34,302 bases of DNA from Salisapilia sapeloensis CBS 127946 (GCA_023334545.1 JAADVB010000207.1:1-34302); one strand, 5' to 3'; numbered from the stretch's first letter, positions 11,876 through 22,994 are shown. Notes: generated by a model not told the origin, from the sequence alone. Numbers and translations are program-made.

Positions 11876-14173
11876 TCAATGCATGTTCGAAGTCTGCATG
11901 AATGGAGGCACTTGCACCAGCGTATTCTGCCATTTCTTATGTCGGAGAGTCACCGCTGCGACTTCAAAGTCACGGATATCCTGTGAAGACTCCATATCGT
12001 CGCCTTCGATGTGCAGCAAGTTGCCATTAAGCAACCGGAGGGGATTATGTCGCGTCTCGGCCAGCATCTGAGCCAAGTGCTTTGGCTTGAAGCACTCTTC
12101 AATCACGCTCGCGCGTCTGTTGCCGGCCACGAACACTAGCAGACACAAGACCACCAGCACTCCACAACCCACGTAGGCGAGTATCGCCGGGACTAAGGGA
12201 ATGGACATGACAATGTCTACATTCTCAGGCGTCGCTAACGATGTCGACGTCTTCATGTCTCTGCCGTCCGCTCGCTTCTGGACGCCATTCTGTAGGAGCC
12301 AAAAGGCGGACGAATAAAAGGCAGGGCTGAAAGAGTCATCTGTGTACCAGTGATTTCGCTCGATCTCGGTCAGCATTCGCCCTCGGTTCACCTGACAGTC
12401 GTTTCCAGTCACCGATTTCCACTTTGAAAAGTCTTCAAACCTTCTCGGGATGATCAGATCGGACTTGATTTCCTCCGAAGCGCCAATCTCCTGCGTATTG
12501 GCAGCAAGTAACATAGGCCACATGTCCATGTTCGGCACGAACTTGGTCAAGTGTCCGTTCGGAAGGTTAGCTTTGCCGACCAGCAATTGCGTGCTACTTT
12601 TGTCGCTCAACTGAATGGCAACTCCTTCGCACGCACCTTCCACCTCACAAGACCGACCAGTAATAGCAGACAGGTCGGTGGTCACCCACTTTAGAATGCC
12701 AACCGTCACGGATACGCTCTTCCTGGCACCACTCACAAGCACTTTCGACCCGTTTCTCTCTATCCTGTCTCCATCGATTGCGGACGAGAAACTGACAACC
12801 AGAAAAGAATTCGTGGCTTTTGTACAGTCAGAAGTTAGTGGGTCCATAGACAGATCGACGTCGACTTGGCCACTCTTGTCCAGACACAGCGACAGAGCCT
12901 TGACTGTTGGGCCCCTATTCAGGAAGGAAGTGGTGCTTCTCTCCGACTTGGGGCCGGTGCCTACGATACAAGCGTCTTCACCACAAGCCTCCTTCGCATT
13001 AATCTCAAAAATGTCTTCTTTCGGCGAGTAGGCAGATTTCGTAGTCTCTCCTGTAACCTCTGATATGGAAATTTTCCTCCGCAAGTAGTTGCTGATGAAA
13101 GGAATGTTAAACGTCACGGAAGACATGGATAATGCGTGCCCATCGACAGCGGTCTCTTGGAAGGACACCGACGCGTCGTCCACATTCAGTAGTCTGGTGT
13201 TGGGATTCGTCGTCCGGTCGAGCACCTTGTCGGACAAGATGGTTGCTGCGTCTTTCACCACCGAGTGTGACTTGGATGTTAGTTGCGTCATTGACCTGTT
13301 TGAAAAGACCGACTGGAGGACATTGAAACCCAGGACCATCAACATCTCCGTCTTCTCCTTGCCAGTCGGTAAGCCATCCACCTTTTCACTCAGCTCTGAT
13401 ACAGCTACTTTGCTCTGCCGCACGTCGTTTGCCACCCGTAGCTTGTCATGCCAACTTGTCGGCGCAAAAGCATACTCGACAGACGTTGAAATGAGTCGAG
13501 GCGAAGGCAGAGAGCACGTTGGGGTCAATCGGGATGGCGGGACTGGAAGCTCCATGCTTCCTCTAACGATCGAGTCCACTGGCGAGTTCGCCCACCACGT
13601 TTCCCTCGTAAAAGTCTCCATGCTCGAATCGTTGATAGTAGAGACGGTCTTCAGGTCACTTCCGGTGATAATGTTGATGACTTCCGACTGTGTCGCATCC
13701 ATACGAATCGCAAAGAAGGCTGTGGTGAGCAACCAGATCACGATCGTACTCGCTGCAATGGTGGCTATCCTGGTAGTTCGCATGTGCTTTTCGTCCAGAG
13801 ATAGATAGAACTTGGTTGACAAGCATAATAGAGTGAGTGGGACAAGCGACGAAACTAGGAATACCACGGGATTCACGACGAGTGCTACGAGAAGCGCCAT
13901 GGACGTCGTATAGTCGGCTAGGTCGACGTCATTGCTGTTGGATGCACTGAGACTGCGTATCGTGATTCCTTCATGGCAAAAGTAGACGAAGAGCACGATG
14001 CATAGGATGCCGACGACCGTCGGCAGCAAGACGCGCAGTCGACGGACCTGCAGTAGTAGAGGCACCGCATTGGTGGCCGCCGTGCGTGAATGAGACGGCT
14101 GTACATTTGCCGAAAGCATGACCTGTGACATGGAGAATGGAGCGGCATTTGTCATGTTCAGTGCGTGGAACAA
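11876..14173 (-). CDS. Uncharacterised membrane protein: about 3 N-terminal TMs, large Cys-containing loop, C-terminal TM
   Basis: 765-aa open frame with hydrophobic segments VLLPTVVGILCIVLFVYF, ALLVALVVNPVVFLVSSLVPLTLLCL, IAASTIVIWLLTTAFFAI and IPLVPAILAYVGCGVLVVLCLLVFVAG. The start codon could be one of several Mets. Confidence 0.8.
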   Translation of the reverse strand: MFHALNMTNAAPFSMSQVMLSANVQPSHSRTAATNAVPLLLQVRRLRVLLPTVVGILCIVLFVYFCHEGITIRSLSASNSNDVDLADYTTSMALLVALVVNPVVFLVSSLVPLTLLCLSTKFYLSLDEKHMRTTRIATIAASTIVIWLLTTAFFAIRMDATQSEVINIITGSDLKTVSTINDSSMETFTRETWWANSPVDSIVRGSMELPVPPSRLTPTCSLPSPRLISTSVEYAFAPTSWHDKLRVANDVRQSKVAVSELSEKVDGLPTGKEKTEMLMVLGFNVLQSVFSNRSMTQLTSKSHSVVKDAATILSDKVLDRTTNPNTRLLNVDDASVSFQETAVDGHALSMSSVTFNIPFISNYLRRKISISEVTGETTKSAYSPKEDIFEINAKEACGEDACIVGTGPKSERSTTSFLNRGPTVKALSLCLDKSGQVDVDLSMDPLTSDCTKATNSFLVVSFSSAIDGDRIERNGSKVLVSGARKSVSVTVGILKWVTTDLSAITGRSCEVEGACEGVAIQLSDKSSTQLLVGKANLPNGHLTKFVPNMDMWPMLLAANTQEIGASEEIKSDLIIPRRFEDFSKWKSVTGNDCQVNRGRMLTEIERNHWYTDDSFSPAFYSSAFWLLQNGVQKRADGRDMKTSTSLATPENVDIVMSIPLVPAILAYVGCGVLVVLCLLVFVAGNRRASVIEECFKPKHLAQMLAETRHNPLRLLNGNLLHIEGDDMESSQDIRDFEVAAVTLRHKKWQNTLVQVPPFMQTSNMH

Positions 14174-15580: not shown

Positions 15581-16686
15581 CTATTTACTTAGCACAGTCC
15601 GTACCACCCACTCGATTGTCACGATCTCACTTAAAGCGCTCGAAACGATGACGCCCACTGCCATCTTGCATGCAACACTCGCCGTCATCTCCGGTAGCTG
15701 CTTTACTGTTTCATGCCGGAAATCTTCCACAGCGTCCTTAATTTCTCCCATAAAAAAGACCAAGGCGAAGTTGAAGAGGTAACCCATCATGAAGCCAACT
15801 AGGACGACATTGGCAAAGCCTAGCGCGATCAACAAGACGTATACTTGGTAGCAGGCGTCGTATCCAATCTTTAACGACAGATTGGTCTGAGTTGCCGACC
15901 GCTTTTTGCTCTTATGAAGCTGCATCGCCAATGGAGCCGAACGCACACTTGATGCGACCATATAGGCGCCGACAAAAAGTGCCGCCCCTATCGAGTAGAC
16001 TGCGACGACAAGGTTCACTTTGTTTTCGAGAAAGTAGATGATGGAAAGCATGGCTACTGGTCCACAATAGACGCTGACAGCAAATTCTTCTAGCCCCTCC
16101 AGCCTGTTAAGTAGAGGTAGGCCACCCATGGAGTACAGCACGGCAATGGACAGCTCCAGTAGCACGATTGCAGAGGTAGCAAGAGGCTTGTCGAGCATGT
16201 AGCACGCCGGGATGACTGCTGAGAACAGCCCAAGCACAAATATATAGGACCAGTTCTGCACTTGCGTCTTCGTTAGCAGGCTACAGCATCAATATATATT
16301 TAGTCACAAACGAAATTGAGGGCATCGAGACTGACGTACTTGAGGACGACGCGATCTTGCTGACTGGAAGAGCTGTCGGAGGAAAAGTTGCTGGCATCAA
16401 CCATCTTTGGCTGGATGGATAGCCGAGCCATGGAGTATACATTGTTTAAATTACTAAGCGCCTGGAGAAAGATTGCTGCAACGAAGACGGCCATGACGTC
16501 CGAACGTAGCAACTCTATCGCTTCGGAGCTATGAAAAGCTGCGATAGGGACACCTGCCACACAAATCGCTGCCACAAGCGACTGTGGTCTGACGGCAGTC
16601 ACCTGTGACGTCCACTGTCAGCAAAGACCAAGTTAGAGGAATATACACGTCCAACGCACCAAGTTCGTCCGGTATTGGGAGCTCAT
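15581..16686 (-). CDS. Multi-pass membrane protein of unknown function (329 aa, 3 exons)
   Basis: Exons 16686-16660, 16602-16340, 16280-15581. Introns of 57 nt (GTGCGT..GCTGAC..CAG) and 59 nt (GTACGT..TAG) join two track ORFs in frame; many hydrophobic segments. Confidence 0.72.
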
Positions 16687-16829
16687 ATCCAAGTGCCGGA
16701 GCAGGTTCCGTTTTCACAGAATACCCCTCATTATTGAAGTTCAGTGCGCCTCCGCTTTTTCCTCTTGGATTTTGTATGGCGACTGGTTTTTGAAGTCGAG
16801 ACAGAATCAAAGAGCTTGGCGGACGGAAG

Positions 16830-17609
16830 ATGGAAGAGGCGACGACGGCCCTGCCAGCGCAGCCCGAGGCATTCCGGCCAGACATGGCGCACTTGAAGGA
16901 GCCCCAGTTCGACCTCAGCATCGAGCCAGAGCAAGAGATGCCGTCACAACCTCTGAAGAAATCGCGAGGAGGCCGAGCCGAAGGAAATAAGCGACACTCG
17001 ACCAAAAGCAAAGCTCGCCCTGGTCTGCGCAAGGGAAAATGGACGATACAAGAGTCCAAATATGCGGAAAGGCTGATCTTTTACTTCAAGGAAGGGCTCT
17101 TGGACATTGGTCGAGGCACCATGCTCCGCATCTTTCTAGCAAACGAACTCAATTGCGAGCCCATGCGCATCACGAAACGATTCACAGGCAGCACTTGCAT
17201 TGGAAAGCAGGTGTATAGACCGTGTCTGGCCACAGCAGAGACGAAGGCTCGGATGATCGAGGCCAAGACAGAGCTAGCGCAGTTGGAAAAGGCCTTCCGA
17301 GCCAAAGTGGAGAACCCGAGGGATTTTGGACCCAAGATGTCGGACAGCGACGAAGATGGGAAGCGGGAAAAAAAGTCTGGCCGAAAGAAACGCAAGACTC
17401 GGGCGAATGAAGAGGCGAATGCGGTGGGACTGTTGCTGGACTTTAGCCAGAAGGCTCAGAGTCGAGACGACGAGAGCGACGAGGACGACGGTGGCGAGAA
17501 GAAAGCAAAGGTGAAGGAAGAATGTGGGGAGAAGAGAGCAAAGGTGAAGGAAGAAGGCGAGGCAGAGGAAGCTCCAAAGGTAGACACGCCGCCGATATTT
17601 TCCATCTAG
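16830..17609 (+). CDS. Putative nuclear protein with a stramenopile-type Myb/SANT-like domain
   Basis: 259 aa containing RKGKWTIQESKYAERLIFYFKEGLLDIGRGTMLRIFLANELNCEPMRITKRFTG..CIGKQVYRPC, followed by a helix and a basic NLS-like stretch (KKSGRKKRKTR). Confidence 0.8.
   Translation: MEEATTALPAQPEAFRPDMAHLKEPQFDLSIEPEQEMPSQPLKKSRGGRAEGNKRHSTKSKARPGLRKGKWTIQESKYAERLIFYFKEGLLDIGRGTMLRIFLANELNCEPMRITKRFTGSTCIGKQVYRPCLATAETKARMIEAKTELAQLEKAFRAKVENPRDFGPKMSDSDEDGKREKKSGRKKRKTRANEEANAVGLLLDFSQKAQSRDDESDEDDGGEKKAKVKEECGEKRAKVKEEGEAEEAPKVDTPPIFSI
17496..17561 (+). repeat. Two-copy 33-bp tandem duplication in coding sequence
   Basis: GAGAAGAAAGCAAAGGTGAAGGAAGAATGTGGG / GAGAAGAGAGCAAAGGTGAAGGAAGAAGGCGAG, encoding EKKAKVKEECG and EKRAKVKEEGE. 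Confidence 0.9.
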
Positions 17610-18526
17610 TCAACACATCCATAAACAATAACCTGTTTTCAAAACTACAAACCAAATTCTCACAAAAAGAATTTTTCATCTAAGCACATCACGCTTTAAA
17701 TTACGACCTGTATAAGAACACCTCCACTCGAATCCCACAGTCGGAGAACTCCGTCCGAGTCCCCTGCCATCAGTCTGCCTGACCGTTTGCTCTTTTTATC
17801 ACACTGCCGACACTCGGTGCGGACGGAGACAGGAAGGCCAGGCCACTGTAGCTGGAAGACGGACGGCTCGAATCCCGCAGGATCCGCTGCGGTCGAGTGG
17901 GAACTTTTTGCAATTAAAACAAGTGAACCTCTATCTTCGACGCGCAGCACACGGCGATCTCGTCCTACTCAAAAGTTAGCATTCGAATGAACAGAGGAAG
18001 CATGCAATATATGCTACTATCATATTCAGAAAATTCCACCGGATGCGCCGAACCTCATACCAGGTCGAGATGAGGTGAATCCAGCGATGTAATGTTAGAC
18101 AATGGTCGTAAAAAATATAAGTGAGTAGATATGAGAAACACAAACAGGCTCTACTCTTCGACACTTGAAGGACTCGCCTCGAGGTGCTTCGTCTGCCGCC
18201 TGGCGCGACCTCTATGTCTGCACTGCATTTATGCTTCGGTGGAAATGCTAATCAAAGTCGTACACGGCGATCACACCTGTGTTGGAGCCAGCCACCAGTA
18301 GAGCGCCTTGTCTTTCAAACTCGAGGCACGTGGCTGTTATCCGGTCCAACATAGTGGGGGCATGTTTCCCACCACGCGACTAGACTTGTGCTAAAAAAGC
18401 CTGCGATCGGCTGCGCCCGCGACCGCTTCATTCTGTAGCTGAATCATATCAAACTCCCACCATTAGGTATCCGCTCTAAAGGGATGTTGAACCCATATCT
18501 GGTTTTGAAGGGAAAGACACTATAAC

Positions 18527-20081
18527 ATGCCATTTGACAACACGATTGGGAGAGATTCTCCACATATTTACCTCTTGATTGTAGTACAGACCTACTTATC
18601 GTATCTTTTTAAAGGATAGATGGCTATCCTTTATCACATGAAGTCACGGCTCCAGGTTTCCATCAATTCCAATGTGAGTCTGATGGACTTGAGCGCTGTA
18701 AGCCAACCTGAATCAGCATCTTAAAATTCATCTGCGACCACTCTCCAGCAGCTCTATCTACGATTTGTTCCCGTTAAGCAAGCGATCCATCATAAAATAA
18801 AGCGTAGCTGTAAGCAGTGGTGGCAATTTGCATTCGGAACCTACTTGCGGGCTTCCACGCCAGTGGACGCATCAGCAGACAGCTCAGCTTGGCCATACTC
18901 ATCTGCGCTACACAAACCCAAGTGGAGCGCATCCTCCGACAACTTCCGCCGACTCAAGTTTATCGTTCTACGCTTTCCGGAAACAGCCCAGCCAGATACC
19001 CACTTCCAGCTCGGCTTCTCTCTCGAAGAGCACTGCGTCACCACGCTCACATCTAACATCTACGCCAAGCAGAGCAGCATGGAGCTTGTCGTCAGCGACA
19101 TCTCGCACGCGCACTTGTGGAAACTGGGCTTCGTGTCGGCGATGTTTTGGAGTGTGTCGGTGGCAAGCCCATTGCTGGGCTGGGCGGTTGCAATGCCTAT
19201 CCTTCGCGTGATCTCCAGTTTGCCAACTACATTCTTAGCGATGGAAAAGGAGTTTCCATTGTCTACAAGAAGCAGCGCCAGCCACCAGCTCCAGCTCGTC
19301 AGTACCCAATTACGCTTAACGCCGAAGACGTTGTCTAGGGCTTGGATCCCGGACGAACAGAGTTCTATAACGCAATCAGCTCAACGGATCGGAAGCTCTC
19401 CTACGCTACTGCCCAGTACTTTCGAGATGCTGGCTCGATAAGAGCACTCGCCGTCGTCAAATTAAGATCAACAGTGATCAGTTTATTCGTACGACATTTA
19501 ATACGATGCCGACGAAGAAGTTGTCGACGCTAAGGGCATTCAGAGTACACCTGGAGTATGTCCTTCCGAAGATCGATATATTGCTCCGATTCTTTATGCA
19601 ACCATTGTTTCTGAATTTAACCTTTACTCACAGTTGATATCATCGCGTCTTGAAAAAATTGTGTCGTCGATTTGTCGACGGAAATGGTACTACGTAAATC
19701 GGATTTGGTGATTGAAGTGCGACCAATTATAATTGTCACCTCAAGAAGACTCAACCAGGTCCGGTGAAACGGTTTGAACGGTAGCTTCGAAGATACTGTA
19801 CCGTGGTCCCGGTCGATGAATTTCGTACGAGTCAGAAGCACCATGGCTGTCATGAACAACTTAAGAATCAAGTATCTCATCGACGTTGTCGCGATGGCGT
19901 AATTCGGAAGCACAAGGTACATAAAGTTCTACATTGTAGTTCGCCTCGACGTAGAAATGCTACGGTCGATCGAGATGAAAACGCAAGTCAAAACATTTTC
20001 GCAACTTTTATGCGTCAGCTCCAAGGCCAGGAGCGATCAGCACCGTTCCAACGACCGCAACGAACCAACGCACAAGACTGA
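18527..20081 (+). pseudogene. Fanzor: Decayed Fanzor1 (eukaryotic TnpB-like RNA-guided RuvC nuclease)
   Basis: Strong core 19219-20081: FANYILSDGKGVSIVYKK (19219-19272); VV*GLDPGR (RuvC-I Asp 19345-19347); YATAQYFRDAG; a frameshift near 19435; then MPTKK...YVLPKIDILLRFF...RVLKKLCRRF...IGFGD*S...PGPVKRFER*LRRYCTVVPVDEFRTS (RuvC-II Glu 19818-19820), HHGCH...VLHC (Zn-finger remnant) and DRDENASQNI (RuvC-III Asp 19974-19976). Five in-frame stops in the core. The N-terminal extension 18527-19130 lies in a third frame with two more stops and is only weakly supported. Confidence 0.88.
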
Positions 20082-20225
20082 AATGTAGAGCAAAACTAGT
20101 AGTTTATTTTATCATGCAGTGCCTCTCTTTGGAGTTGTAACTGCATGACAGCTTCTTGTCTTAGATTTATGATTCATAGCATTAAGCCGTTCGACCACGC
20201 GGTATTGGATATTACAATTCAATAT
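20040..20225 (+). ncRNA. Candidate Fanzor omegaRNA scaffold / element right end
   Basis: Position inferred from known Fanzor/TnpB architecture. Stems seen: TCATGCAGT (20112-20120) / ACTGCATGA (20140-20148), GACAG/TTGTC (20147-20160), TATTGGAT/ATTCAATA (20203-20224). Boundaries are not determinable. Confidence 0.3.
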
Positions 20226-20277
20226 TGTGGGGATCCAAACAGGGCCTAAAACTACATAATTTAATTGGTTTGCGTCT

Positions 20278-20694
20278 TCAGTTCACGCCTTCGATCCGAG
20301 GCAGATTGAAATTGATTGGAGGAACCTTGGACGACACGCGCTGGTACGGCGAGTACCGGTACTTGGTCATGCACCGACGGCGGTGACGAGACTGCATGCT
20401 CATTCGCTCGGCACAAGTCCGGCAATGGCATTCGACGCTGCCGGTGCGATCATCACCGAGCCAGAAGACCAAGTCCGTGTACGAGATGTCGTCGCACATG
20501 GGCTCCATGGCCGGCTCCAGCTCGCACTTGGTCGGTACCATTTGGGCAGGTGGCAGTTCATAAGGGTTCAACGTGATGTTGGAGGAGTTGACGAGAATAG
20601 CTTGCATAAGGTCTTCTTCCTCCCAGAGCTTAAAGTCTTCCGTGTCGAGCCATGAAGGCGAAGTGGGAAGGTCGGACGTGGGAGTGTTCGGCAT
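20278..20694 (-). CDS. Small hypothetical protein (138 aa) with CxCxxC and basic C-terminus
   Basis: The first ATG in the 171-codon track ORF is at 20694: MPNTPTSDLP...VECHCRTCAERMSMQSRHRRRCMTKYRYSPYQRV. Confidence 0.6.
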   Translation of the reverse strand: MPNTPTSDLPTSPSWLDTEDFKLWEEEDLMQAILVNSSNITLNPYELPPAQMVPTKCELEPAMEPMCDDISYTDLVFWLGDDRTGSVECHCRTCAERMSMQSRHRRRCMTKYRYSPYQRVSSKVPPINFNLPRIEGVN

Positions 20695-21409
20695 CGTCTT
20701 GAGCGAAACGAGCGGAGAAGGAGAGAAGCGAGTAAAGCTGACGTTTGTGCACTTTCCAGTGAATTGAGGAATGAGAGCGTAGATGCCACGCACAAAGAGC
20801 GAAAAAAATTGGAAGACGTAGCGAAAGGACGGTCGAGTAGCATTTCAAACCTTTTTCTTCCGCGTGCCTCGGATGAACCCTGCATGTAGCCCAGTTGGTA
20901 GCAACAATGGTACACCCGAAGCGTTGCGATCCACGCGTTCTGGATGTTCCAGGGCTGCACTGGACGTCAAACAGGTCGAAATATGGAAAGGAAGTAGCCA
21001 TAACCTTCTTCCGACACGCTACTTCCATCTCCAAGATCGAAGCCGTCTCGGATAACCCACCTCACTTCTGTTTCACCGTATGGTGACAAAAGTTCGCTTT
21101 ATCTGGACGCTAATGGAAACTTGTCAGAAGACAGGCGGATTAGTTGCAATGGAGCAGCTTCGCACGGTCTAAGCGACGTACGAACGACGACTTGCACCGC
21201 TTCAGACGGATTGAAGCGCAGACACGAGGGAGATGGATGGCTGTTCAGAACCTTTCCTCTCGCTCTATCCTTCGGTTCAGACAGCTAAGTTTCCACGGTC
21301 GTTCGCCTGCCCATCTGCTCTCGACGCCTTCGACCAAAGAGGTTGCTCCTCGCTATTCGACATCCTCTTGAGCCCAATTCAACCTCTTGATTTATTTCGA
21401 TCAAATTAA

Positions 21410-22994
21410 TCACTGGACTTTCAGAATCAAGTCCGTCTTCACTTGCATACTCTCCCGCTTATACACGTCTACATTCACACCGTACTGGTCGCGCAGTACC
21501 GGCACCAGCAGCTGCAGAAACCCAGCACACACGTTCTCCTCCACTCCATCCACCCGGAAAGCATCCTTCTTGCCAGTGCCTCGGAGCACACGATGCAGAA
21601 AGTCAGTCAGTTCCATTCGCTTCTTACTGTCACCAGCGCTCCAATTCGCCACAAAGTTCTTTATCAGCGGAGACGTCAAGTCCACCGGCAGTGAAGGGTA
21701 CCCTTCCACTTGCTTCCATGTCTCCTTGCTTTTCTCTTCCAACCCAACAGCCACTGCACTCTCCAGACGTGTTTGCTGCAAGTCGTCCACCTCCTGCTTC
21801 AGTTGCTGCACATGCGCCTCCAAAGCCTTTTGCGACACTACCGCAGCACTCCACTCGCTTTTTGTCTGCCTCAGAATGTCACGCGTTAGTTGGTGCTGTT
21901 TCTGAAGTAAGCGATAGTCGTCCATCAGCTTTTCCAGATCGGACGCTTGGTTATCGATCGGCTCTGGCTCTTCCATCGAAGTCTCCGTCTTGGACGCTTG
22001 GTTCCCGATCTCCTCCGGCTCTTCCGGTTCTTTCCGACCCAGTATCTCGGAGCTAGCAAGAGCCGACCGTAGCTCCTTGATCTGGAGCTCCAGCGTCAGA
22101 TTGCTTTCAATCAGCACGTCCTGCACTGACGTCTCGCTCGAGTCGATGGCTGCAGTCGGACTCGATGGCTGCGATCCATTCGGCACTTCCAGCAGTTCCT
22201 ACAAAAGGCGTTCAACAAGATACTCCAGTCTACATCCCCTGCAAAAGTACCTTGTACTTGTAGTTCATGTTCGTCAGACTCTCGATCATGGCCTGACTCT
22301 CCTTTGCTTCCGCCTCCAGCTCCTCATTCAGCTCCTGTACTCGACTCACTTTGGCCTCCAAGTGACTGATATAAGACGCAGCCTCCTCCTGCATCTGAAG
22401 CCTCCTCTTCAAGCCCTCATTCTCTTTTGCAACACTCTTCTTCTCCCTCTCTAGCCTCGCCTTTTCGTCTACTACTCGATCGTATCTTTGCGTCAGCTCG
22501 GCGTACTCCTCCTCATTCTTCAAATCCGCCAAGGATCCTTTTCGAATGAGGTGCTCGGACTGGAAGCGACGCATTGAAGGCATCACAACCGCATTCTCCT
22601 TGTTCTGCTCCTGCAACCGCTCGTTCTCCTCCATGAGCTGCGCTGCCCGACGCTTGTACTCTGCAATAGACTGTTCCATTCGCGTCTGCCTCTCCAGCAG
22701 CTCCTCCACATATCGAGTCTTGGCTGCCAAGTTCGTCCGCAGTTCACTCAGCTCCATGTAATTCTGTCTGCGCTCGGTCTTCAAAGCGTCCAGCTCATGC
22801 GTCTTGTCCTCGAGGTGCGACTGGAAGTTCGTTTCGGCATCCAACTGCTGGAGCACTTCCAGTTGAGCTCGAAGGGCTGCATTTTCATCCTGTAGCTCTC
22901 TCGTCTGTTCCAGCAGTTGGATGCCAAAACGCGCAGTTCTTCTCAGGATTGCAGACTCTCCGTCACTCTCTTCCCCATCCTCACATGCCAGCAC
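21410..22994 (-). CDS. Coiled-coil protein with CC1-box-like N-terminus and conserved C-terminal domain (510 aa, 2 exons)
   Basis: Exons 22994-22251 and 22198-21410; a 52-nt intron GTACTT..TGTAG joins two track ORFs in frame (YK|ELLEVPNG). N-terminus ILRRTARFGIQLLEQTREL; C-terminal domain shared with 30476-33157. Confidence 0.82.

Follow-up and report, generated by a model that had tools for sequence, protein, structure and literature searches.

The stretch from about 19100 to 20081 on the plus strand of the analyzed DNA is very probably a non-functional, truncated Fanzor1 pseudogene fragment corresponding to the C-terminal ~45% of the protein. Fanzor1 proteins are eukaryotic TnpB-type nucleases that are guided by an omegaRNA and cut DNA with a split RuvC domain into which a zinc finger is inserted. 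The analyzed DNA, hereafter the window, is a whole stretch of 34,302 nt from Salisapilia sapeloensis CBS 127946. The first-pass annotation had proposed a whole gene, hidden in pieces, at 18527–20081. The interval ~19100–20081 stands, and 18527–19100 had to be given up because it matches the family in no frame; the relic is thus ~980 nt long, not 1555 nt, and what begins at 18527 is a small ORF unrelated to it. The locus itself shows the homology and its collinearity, the lesions, the loss of the N-terminal half, and the lack of a transposase or terminal repeats, and the Fanzor1 affiliation was established at the family level.

The family was represented by A1, an alignment and profile of 30 full-length relatives with 648 positions, and the relic pieces were searched either singly or with the breaks written as X. 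On the plus strand, seven pieces, each running from stop to stop in one of two frames, fall in strict order on A1 positions 319–626 of 648, with E-values per piece from 7e-41 to 0.05. The features are as follows, with frames labeled by the start coordinate modulo 3.

18527–19101, plus strand: stretch not demonstrably part of the relic, with no family match above noise in any frame
19057–19335 and 19339–19530, plus strand: stop-to-stop pieces in frame 1
19371–19634, 19638–19694, 19698–19712, 19716–19781 and 19785–20078, plus strand: stop-to-stop pieces in frame 0
19102–19335, plus strand: piece 1, frame 1, the strands immediately ahead of RuvC-I, including the motif FANYILSDGKGVSIV; hmmalign places 19204–19284 on A1 319–345
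19336–19338, plus strand: stop 1, TAG, where many aligned relatives have the Trp before GLDPGR
19339–19446, plus strand: piece 2, frame 1, RuvC-I with GLDPGR; 19342–19440 falls on A1 378–412
19431–19446, plus strand: frameshift zone, frame 1 to frame 0, where the two tblastn matches meet; the profile matches overlap at 19437–19446
19437–19634, plus strand: piece 3, frame 0, between RuvC-I and RuvC-II, with MPTKK; 19440–19634 falls on A1 413–476, E 1.3e-10
19635–19637, plus strand: stop 2, TGA
19638–19694, plus strand: piece 4, frame 0, on A1 483–496; weak alone, but in order
19695–19697, plus strand: stop 3, TAA, directly before IGFGD
19698–19712, plus strand: piece 5, frame 0, IGFGD, on A1 502–506; G, F and G nearly invariant
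19713–19715, plus strand: stop 4, TGA, where relatives mostly have Trp and some Cys (GFGDW or GFGDC)
19716–19781, plus strand: piece 6, frame 0, with PGPVK, on A1 509–528, E 0.05 by itself; GPVK has an invariant Pro
19782–19784, plus strand: stop 5, TAG
19785–20078, plus strand: piece 7, frame 0, RuvC-II, zinc finger, RuvC-III and C-terminal tail, on A1 530–626, E 7e-41
20079–20081, plus strand: stop TGA, about where relatives end; alignments reach within a few residues of the C-termini of P0001 and others
20082–20277, plus strand: 3′ flank, the expected site of an omegaRNA and of the right end

The motif strings on which the first-pass annotation was built are all present on the plus strand in the order it gave: frame 1 bears FANYILSDGKGVSIV and GLDPGR, and frame 0 bears MPTKK, IGFGD, PGPVKRFER, VDEFRTS, the zinc-finger residues, and DRDENAS. 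Its proposal that these blocks, joined across stops and a frameshift, are collinear with Fanzor is borne out by the strict order on A1, and the profile comparison it called for confirms the homology. Piece 7 (98 aa) matches the Pfam family PF07282 (Cas12f1-like TNB domain) at E 1.2e-5 and 25.8 bits, just below the cut-off of 26.3, and aligns with the C-terminal end of the NCBIfam model guided_TnpB (positions 334–386 of 389). Searched against 1.84 billion cluster representatives, the same piece retrieved 143 proteins at E ≤0.001, the best at 1.6e-16; most of these are 550–800 aa long, and the match is their C-terminus. In tblastn comparisons with the window, full-length relatives match at two collinear sites, the first in frame 1 and the second in frame 0, with E-values of 1e-33 to 1e-43; the matches cover only residues ~309–599 of a 599-aa relative, and the pattern recurs across 245 relatives. 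With stops read as X, the profile built from the nearest sublineage reaches E 2e-55 for 19437–20057. At the left margin, the tblastn matches of some relatives start weakly at 19099–19114 in piece 1. Piece 2 aligns with positions 473–515 of the sublineage profile (19318–19446, E 1e-6), and its DPG columns are invariant in the family. The counterpart of piece 3 in the model of the metagenomic relative P0002 (residues 435–525) is helical. No other Fanzor1 copy was found within the window, where the profile matches nowhere outside the relic.

The three catalytic acids are intact, as had been claimed. The RuvC-I Asp (codon 19345–19347), RuvC-II Glu (19818–19820), and RuvC-III Asp (19974–19976) fall in the near-invariant family columns 380, 541, and 594, and these columns align with the DPN, DEYKTS, and NRD motifs of Spizellomyces punctatus Fanzor1 (SpuFz1), which hold its catalytic residues D383, E541, and D606 (PMC10432273). 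The zinc-finger (TNB) insertion sits between RuvC-II and RuvC-III. The D-E-D order with an inserted zinc finger stands, with the reservation that the relic retains three of four ligand positions (His 19839–19841, Cys 19848–19850, and Cys 19935–19937) and the fourth has been lost by a change from Cys to Arg at 19950–19952. A His instead of Cys at the first position occurs in 83 of ~159 relatives; HxxC is thus a family variant, not decay. The signature that Yoon et al. give for Fanzor combines DPG at RuvC-I with a RuvC-II Glu that precedes the first zinc-finger pair by six residues (PMC10711439), and the relic carries GLDPGR as well as Glu, six residues, and then HxxC.

The distinction between Fanzor1 and Fanzor2 was drawn on the family and on P0002, its closest full-length member to the relic, and the relic is joined to the family at 7e-41 and 2e-55. 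The A1 profile matches the solved structures of SpuFz1 (8GKH) at E 3.8e-37, Parasitella parasitica Fanzor1 (PpFz1, 9CF0) at 5.5e-34, and Guillardia theta Fanzor1 (GtFz1, 9CER) at 2.9e-30 over profile positions 29–604, but mimivirus Fanzor2 (9B0L) at only 1.3e-5. The suggested structural comparison with SpuFz1 was carried out on the AlphaFold model of P0002 (pLDDT 84, pTM 0.81) and agrees: SpuFz comes first at E 1e-21 (TM 0.59/0.66), GtFz and PpFz follow (1e-21 to 3e-19 across SpuFz and GtFz), and Cas12f, TnpB, and Fanzor2 lie at 1e-5 to 1e-4 with TM ~0.2–0.35 (Fanzor2, 1.4e-4). Searched alone against the solved structures, the relic pieces gave no match, and the link to the Fanzor1 structures runs via the family profile. 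As judged from sequence, the relic is a decayed gene of the TnpB superfamily and of the Fanzor1 type.

The relatives are distant. The best identity of any protein to the relic is 37–45% over the aligned parts and at most ~45% over the whole relic; piece 7 (98 aa) is 52% identical to P0002. Oomycete relatives come from Nothophytophthora, Phytophthora capsici, P. nicotianae, P. citrophthora, P. palmivora, P. sojae, and Globisporangium, green-algal relatives from Klebsormidium, Coccomyxa, and Asterochloris, and one cluster lies on a contig with an NCLDV capsid gene. In a tree built with FastTree only (A1 columns 319–626, 256 aligned positions), the relic, on a long branch, groups with P0025 of P. 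sojae, P0240 of P. nicotianae, and P0002 at an SH-like support of 0.98. The own sublineage of P0002 comprises Nothophytophthora and P. citrophthora.

P0002 is encoded in a complete element of 3.4 kb (contig L004, 3260–6621), which consists of TA, a 37-nt TIR, a transposase, Fanzor1, ~85 nt, the TIR, and TA; the genes are a DDE_3 Tc1/mariner transposase at 3345–4232 and the 679-aa Fanzor1 at 4458–6497. By analogy, the carrier of the relic may have been a Tc1/mariner-type transposon, a proposal to which we give an even chance. It is a best guess only, because the window holds neither a transposase nor TIRs and because some sublineage members, such as those at L007 and L008, stand alone between host genes, with another relative located on a giant-virus contig (L002); a further point against it is that it is drawn from one relative, ~40% identical. 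No credible terminal repeats were found around the relic in the window, nor was any remnant of a DDE_3 transposase. On the P0002 contig, a second, identical copy of the last 119 nt of the element (the post-stop sequence and right repeat) lies at 46–164, and this copy carries no gene. It resembles the 'ghost' loci that have reportedly been found for SpuFz1.

Several relatives deserve separate mention. P0001, an annotated 599-aa protein of Nothophytophthora sp. Chile5 (L001, 1906–3705), has Val at the position of the RuvC-II Glu, a residue present in 149 of 159 relatives and kept by P0161, its 89%-identical paralogue. Despite its open reading frame, P0001 is probably catalytically dead, to judge by this substitution. 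Public databases list P0179, a 648-aa member of this eukaryotic Fanzor1 family, as a 'transposase' from a 3.3-kb contig of a Thermoplasmata archaeon MAG; its 47% identity to a protein of an oomycete suggests that a contig of eukaryotic or viral origin was mis-binned. A third contig, L002 (features at 1684–3360 and 12679–13360), is of metagenomic origin and bears the Fanzor1 homologue P0159 together with genes for an NCLDV major capsid protein, a helicase of the SNF2 type, and RNase H; P0159 is thus a family member carried by a giant virus.

Five in-frame stops and a single frameshift break the reading frame of the relic. Over 16600–21600, no differing letter or indel appears in the contigs of three RNA libraries (2019) or in those of one DNA run (2022), the latter possibly the source of the assembly itself. 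Since RNA and DNA contigs agree letter for letter, the lesions are real and not assembly errors. Across 18526–20277 the RNA contigs are free of splice joints, and the two short introns of a neighboring minus-strand gene are visible in the same contigs; the stops are therefore not spliced out. At columns conserved in at least 60% of the family, the relic keeps 59 of 80 scorable residues (74%), compared with a median of 82% and a 5th percentile of 65% among intact members. Decay since inactivation has therefore been moderate, and its timing cannot be fixed. The relic is clearly dead, yet not heavily eroded.

The N-terminal half of the protein is missing. A1 positions 1–318 have no counterpart in any frame of the window, whether A1 was run on six-frame fragments or the sublineage profile was used with X at the stops. 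A permissive search with the N-terminal halves of 149 relatives, followed by a diagonal test, returned only noise upstream of ~19100: the matches lie off the expected diagonal and are equally frequent on the opposite strand. Several N-terminal motifs are well conserved in the family consensus of 30 relatives, such as the near-invariant Pro and Lys of LLPxK. Across 245 relatives, the leftmost tblastn match begins at 19099, and every relative has ~290–470 residues ahead of the part that matches the relic. The relatives are 599–806 aa long, and the relic lacks the N-terminal WED and enlarged REC architecture of Fanzor1. The room upstream amounts to ~570 nt (18527–19100), or ~700 nt up to the first exon of a minus-strand gene, whereas ~950 nt would be needed.

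The same upstream region holds most of a 239-codon stop-free stretch in frame 2 (18725–19441, plus strand), whose right part lies over the relic but in a different frame. Pfam and the Atlas give no match for this stretch, which shows no Fanzor homology either, and it could conceal an N-terminal remnant too diverged for detection. The ORF at 18845–19441 was rejected as a real gene, given the absence of a Pfam match and Atlas scores at chance level. An inverted duplication was likewise discarded: a 40-nt imperfect inverted repeat (19078–19117/20470–20509) exists, but tblastx gave no supporting similarity, and the repeat is attributed to chance.

A spliced and expressed minus-strand gene was observed at 17650–18398, in a 2.7-kb gap that was supposedly empty. 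According to the RNA contigs, this gene extends from ~17650 to 18398 with exon ends at 17963, 18017, 18222, and 18277. Its GT..AG introns lie at 17964–18016 (53 nt) and 18223–18276 (54 nt), with an alternative donor five bases away; the first exon is 18277–18398, where the promoter region also lies, and the probable ATG is at 18352. The product looks WD40-like, and one exon has no Pfam match. Another neighbor encodes a Myb-like protein with homologues in oomycetes only, at 42–62% identity. Synteny could not be established through this Myb-like protein, as the nearest contig is not syntenic and the best orthologues are only 42–62% identical.

Unspliced RNA contigs of 4.4–4.7 kb from three samples (18526–21600) extend from the right-hand side of the first exon of that gene through the relic into the minus-strand genes at 20278–20793 and 21410–22186. 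They cover the relic continuously, and their left ends lie at 18277 in one sample and at 18526 or 18558 in the other two. The contigs carry no direction and therefore attest presence in RNA libraries, not a sense transcript. The RNA signal of the relic probably comes from transcription of neighboring genes.

An omegaRNA is expected at the 3′ end of a Fanzor1 gene, next to the right end of the element. In the window, the fold of 19960–20260 is modestly stable relative to shuffled sequences (z −2.5), and the 3′ flank has no Rfam match; 20082–20277 may be the 3′ UTR of the minus-strand gene ending at 20278. At four related loci from Nothophytophthora, P. citrophthora, and metagenomes (L004 6438–6562, L009 2770–2881, L007 5243–5360, and L008 5198–5322), a structured region spans the Fanzor1 stop and ~85 nt beyond it; RNAalifold gives 25 pairs, seven of them with compensatory changes. 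This conserved 3′ structure is a plausible candidate for the omegaRNA scaffold of the oomycete sublineage of P0002. A covariance model of it gave a best E of 0.72 in the window, on the wrong strand, and missed the P. sojae relative too. This negative result says little because the model is too narrow, missing the P. sojae locus as well.

Several other explanations of the locus were weighed. That the gene still functions, through stops lying in introns, through readthrough or programmed frameshifting, or with piece 7 serving as a small zinc-finger protein, has a probability close to nil. The region does occur in RNA-library contigs of three samples, and the catalytic residues and most conserved columns are kept. 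However, introns would have left splice joints in 18526–20277, where none is seen in runs that reveal those of the neighbor. The stops lie inside conserved motifs (the Trp before GLDPGR; right after GFGD) and not in spacers, the N-terminal half is absent, and piece 7 has no ATG ahead of its conserved part. It is also very unlikely that 18527–20081 contains a whole decayed Fanzor1 whose N-terminal half has diverged beyond recognition. Such a reading could draw on the 239 stop-free codons of frame 2, on the poor conservation of Fanzor1 N-terminal regions, and on a few weak tblastn matches of the relatives' residues ~155–260 in frame 2 at 18704–19024. Yet these matches have E-values of 0.02–0.3 among 149 queries, lie off the diagonal, and occur in similar numbers on the opposite strand; both profiles are silent even though the family has well-conserved N-terminal motifs; and the interval from 18527 to 19100 falls short of the required length, with the promoter region and first exon of the minus-strand gene lying at 18277–18398.

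The origin of the fragment was considered as well. Fanzor1 has been reported in giant viruses (PMC10432273; PMC3627910), and the P0022/P0159 cluster, whose identity to the relic is 37–39%, comes from a metagenome contig with an NCLDV major capsid gene, as would suit a fragment left by an integrated giant-virus segment and not by a cellular transposon. We regard this origin as highly improbable, since no viral gene is nearby, the neighbors are spliced host genes, and the tree places the relic with the Phytophthora copies and not with the cluster on the NCLDV contig. The relic is at most ~45% identical over its length to anything among 1.8 billion representatives, and there is a slim chance that it marks a divergent oomycete Fanzor1 sublineage alive elsewhere in the genome, or that its transcribed, hairpin-bearing 3′ part was retained as a non-coding RNA once the protein had died.

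Under the preferred reading of a truncated pseudogene fragment, a Fanzor1-bearing mobile element would have inserted between two host genes of an oomycete. The likeliest type would be Tc1/mariner, like the carrier of the closest full-length relative. The 5′ part would then have been lost, including the transposase (if any), the left end of the element, and the WED/REC half at the Fanzor N-terminus, and the remainder would subsequently have gained five nonsense mutations and one frameshift and lost one zinc ligand. In this scheme, the type of carrier, the succession of events, and the cause of the RNA signal are inferred. No nuclease can be made from the relic.

The first-pass annotation had expected that the ancestral protein could be reconstructed. 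This expectation fails: the nearest proteins are 37–45% identical, and with half of the protein gone and no close relative to draw on, the locus does not allow the ancestor to be rebuilt. For the same reasons, as no close intact relative is known, the locus does not lead to a new nuclease. The find, although real, is ordinary, because the family has been known in water molds since 2013. Its value lies in annotation: the three small ORFs at this site are not genes but belong to a single transposon-derived pseudogene, and the locus should be masked as a Fanzor1 fragment. Furthermore, it adds one more data point to the repeated entry and decay of Fanzor1 elements in oomycete genomes.

The occurrence of Fanzor1 in oomycetes, which the first-pass annotation had asserted, is well documented. 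The set of Bao and Jurka from 2013 covers Pythium ultimum (PUl-1 to PUl-6), three Phytophthora species (P. sojae, P. capsici, and P. ramorum), and Albugo (PMC3627910, Table 1). It includes mariner-borne Fanzor1 elements of Pythium, among them PUl-1 with a transposase upstream of Fanzor1 (PMC3627910). These belong to the same protein family and host group as the relic, and the layout of the P0002 element is that of PUl-1. The relic differs from them in being 5′-truncated, with five stops, a frameshift, and no transposase, TIR, or target-site duplication; the locus is one more degenerate copy of this published oomycete family. SpuFz1 and GtFz1 share only ~16% sequence identity even with the intact relative of the relic, and their first zinc ligand is Cys, whereas the relic and about half of its family have His. 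Fanzor2 (Acanthamoeba polyphaga mimivirus L79, 9B0L) and TnpB (ISDra2, 8H1J) share the split RuvC and the zinc finger (TNB, PF07282). However, their matches to the family of the relic are far weaker (1.3e-5 by profile for Fanzor2; ~1e-4 by fold, with TM 0.2–0.33), and unlike Fanzor2 and TnpB, the relatives of the relic are proteins of 600–800 aa that bear the extensive N-terminal and REC additions characteristic of Fanzor1.
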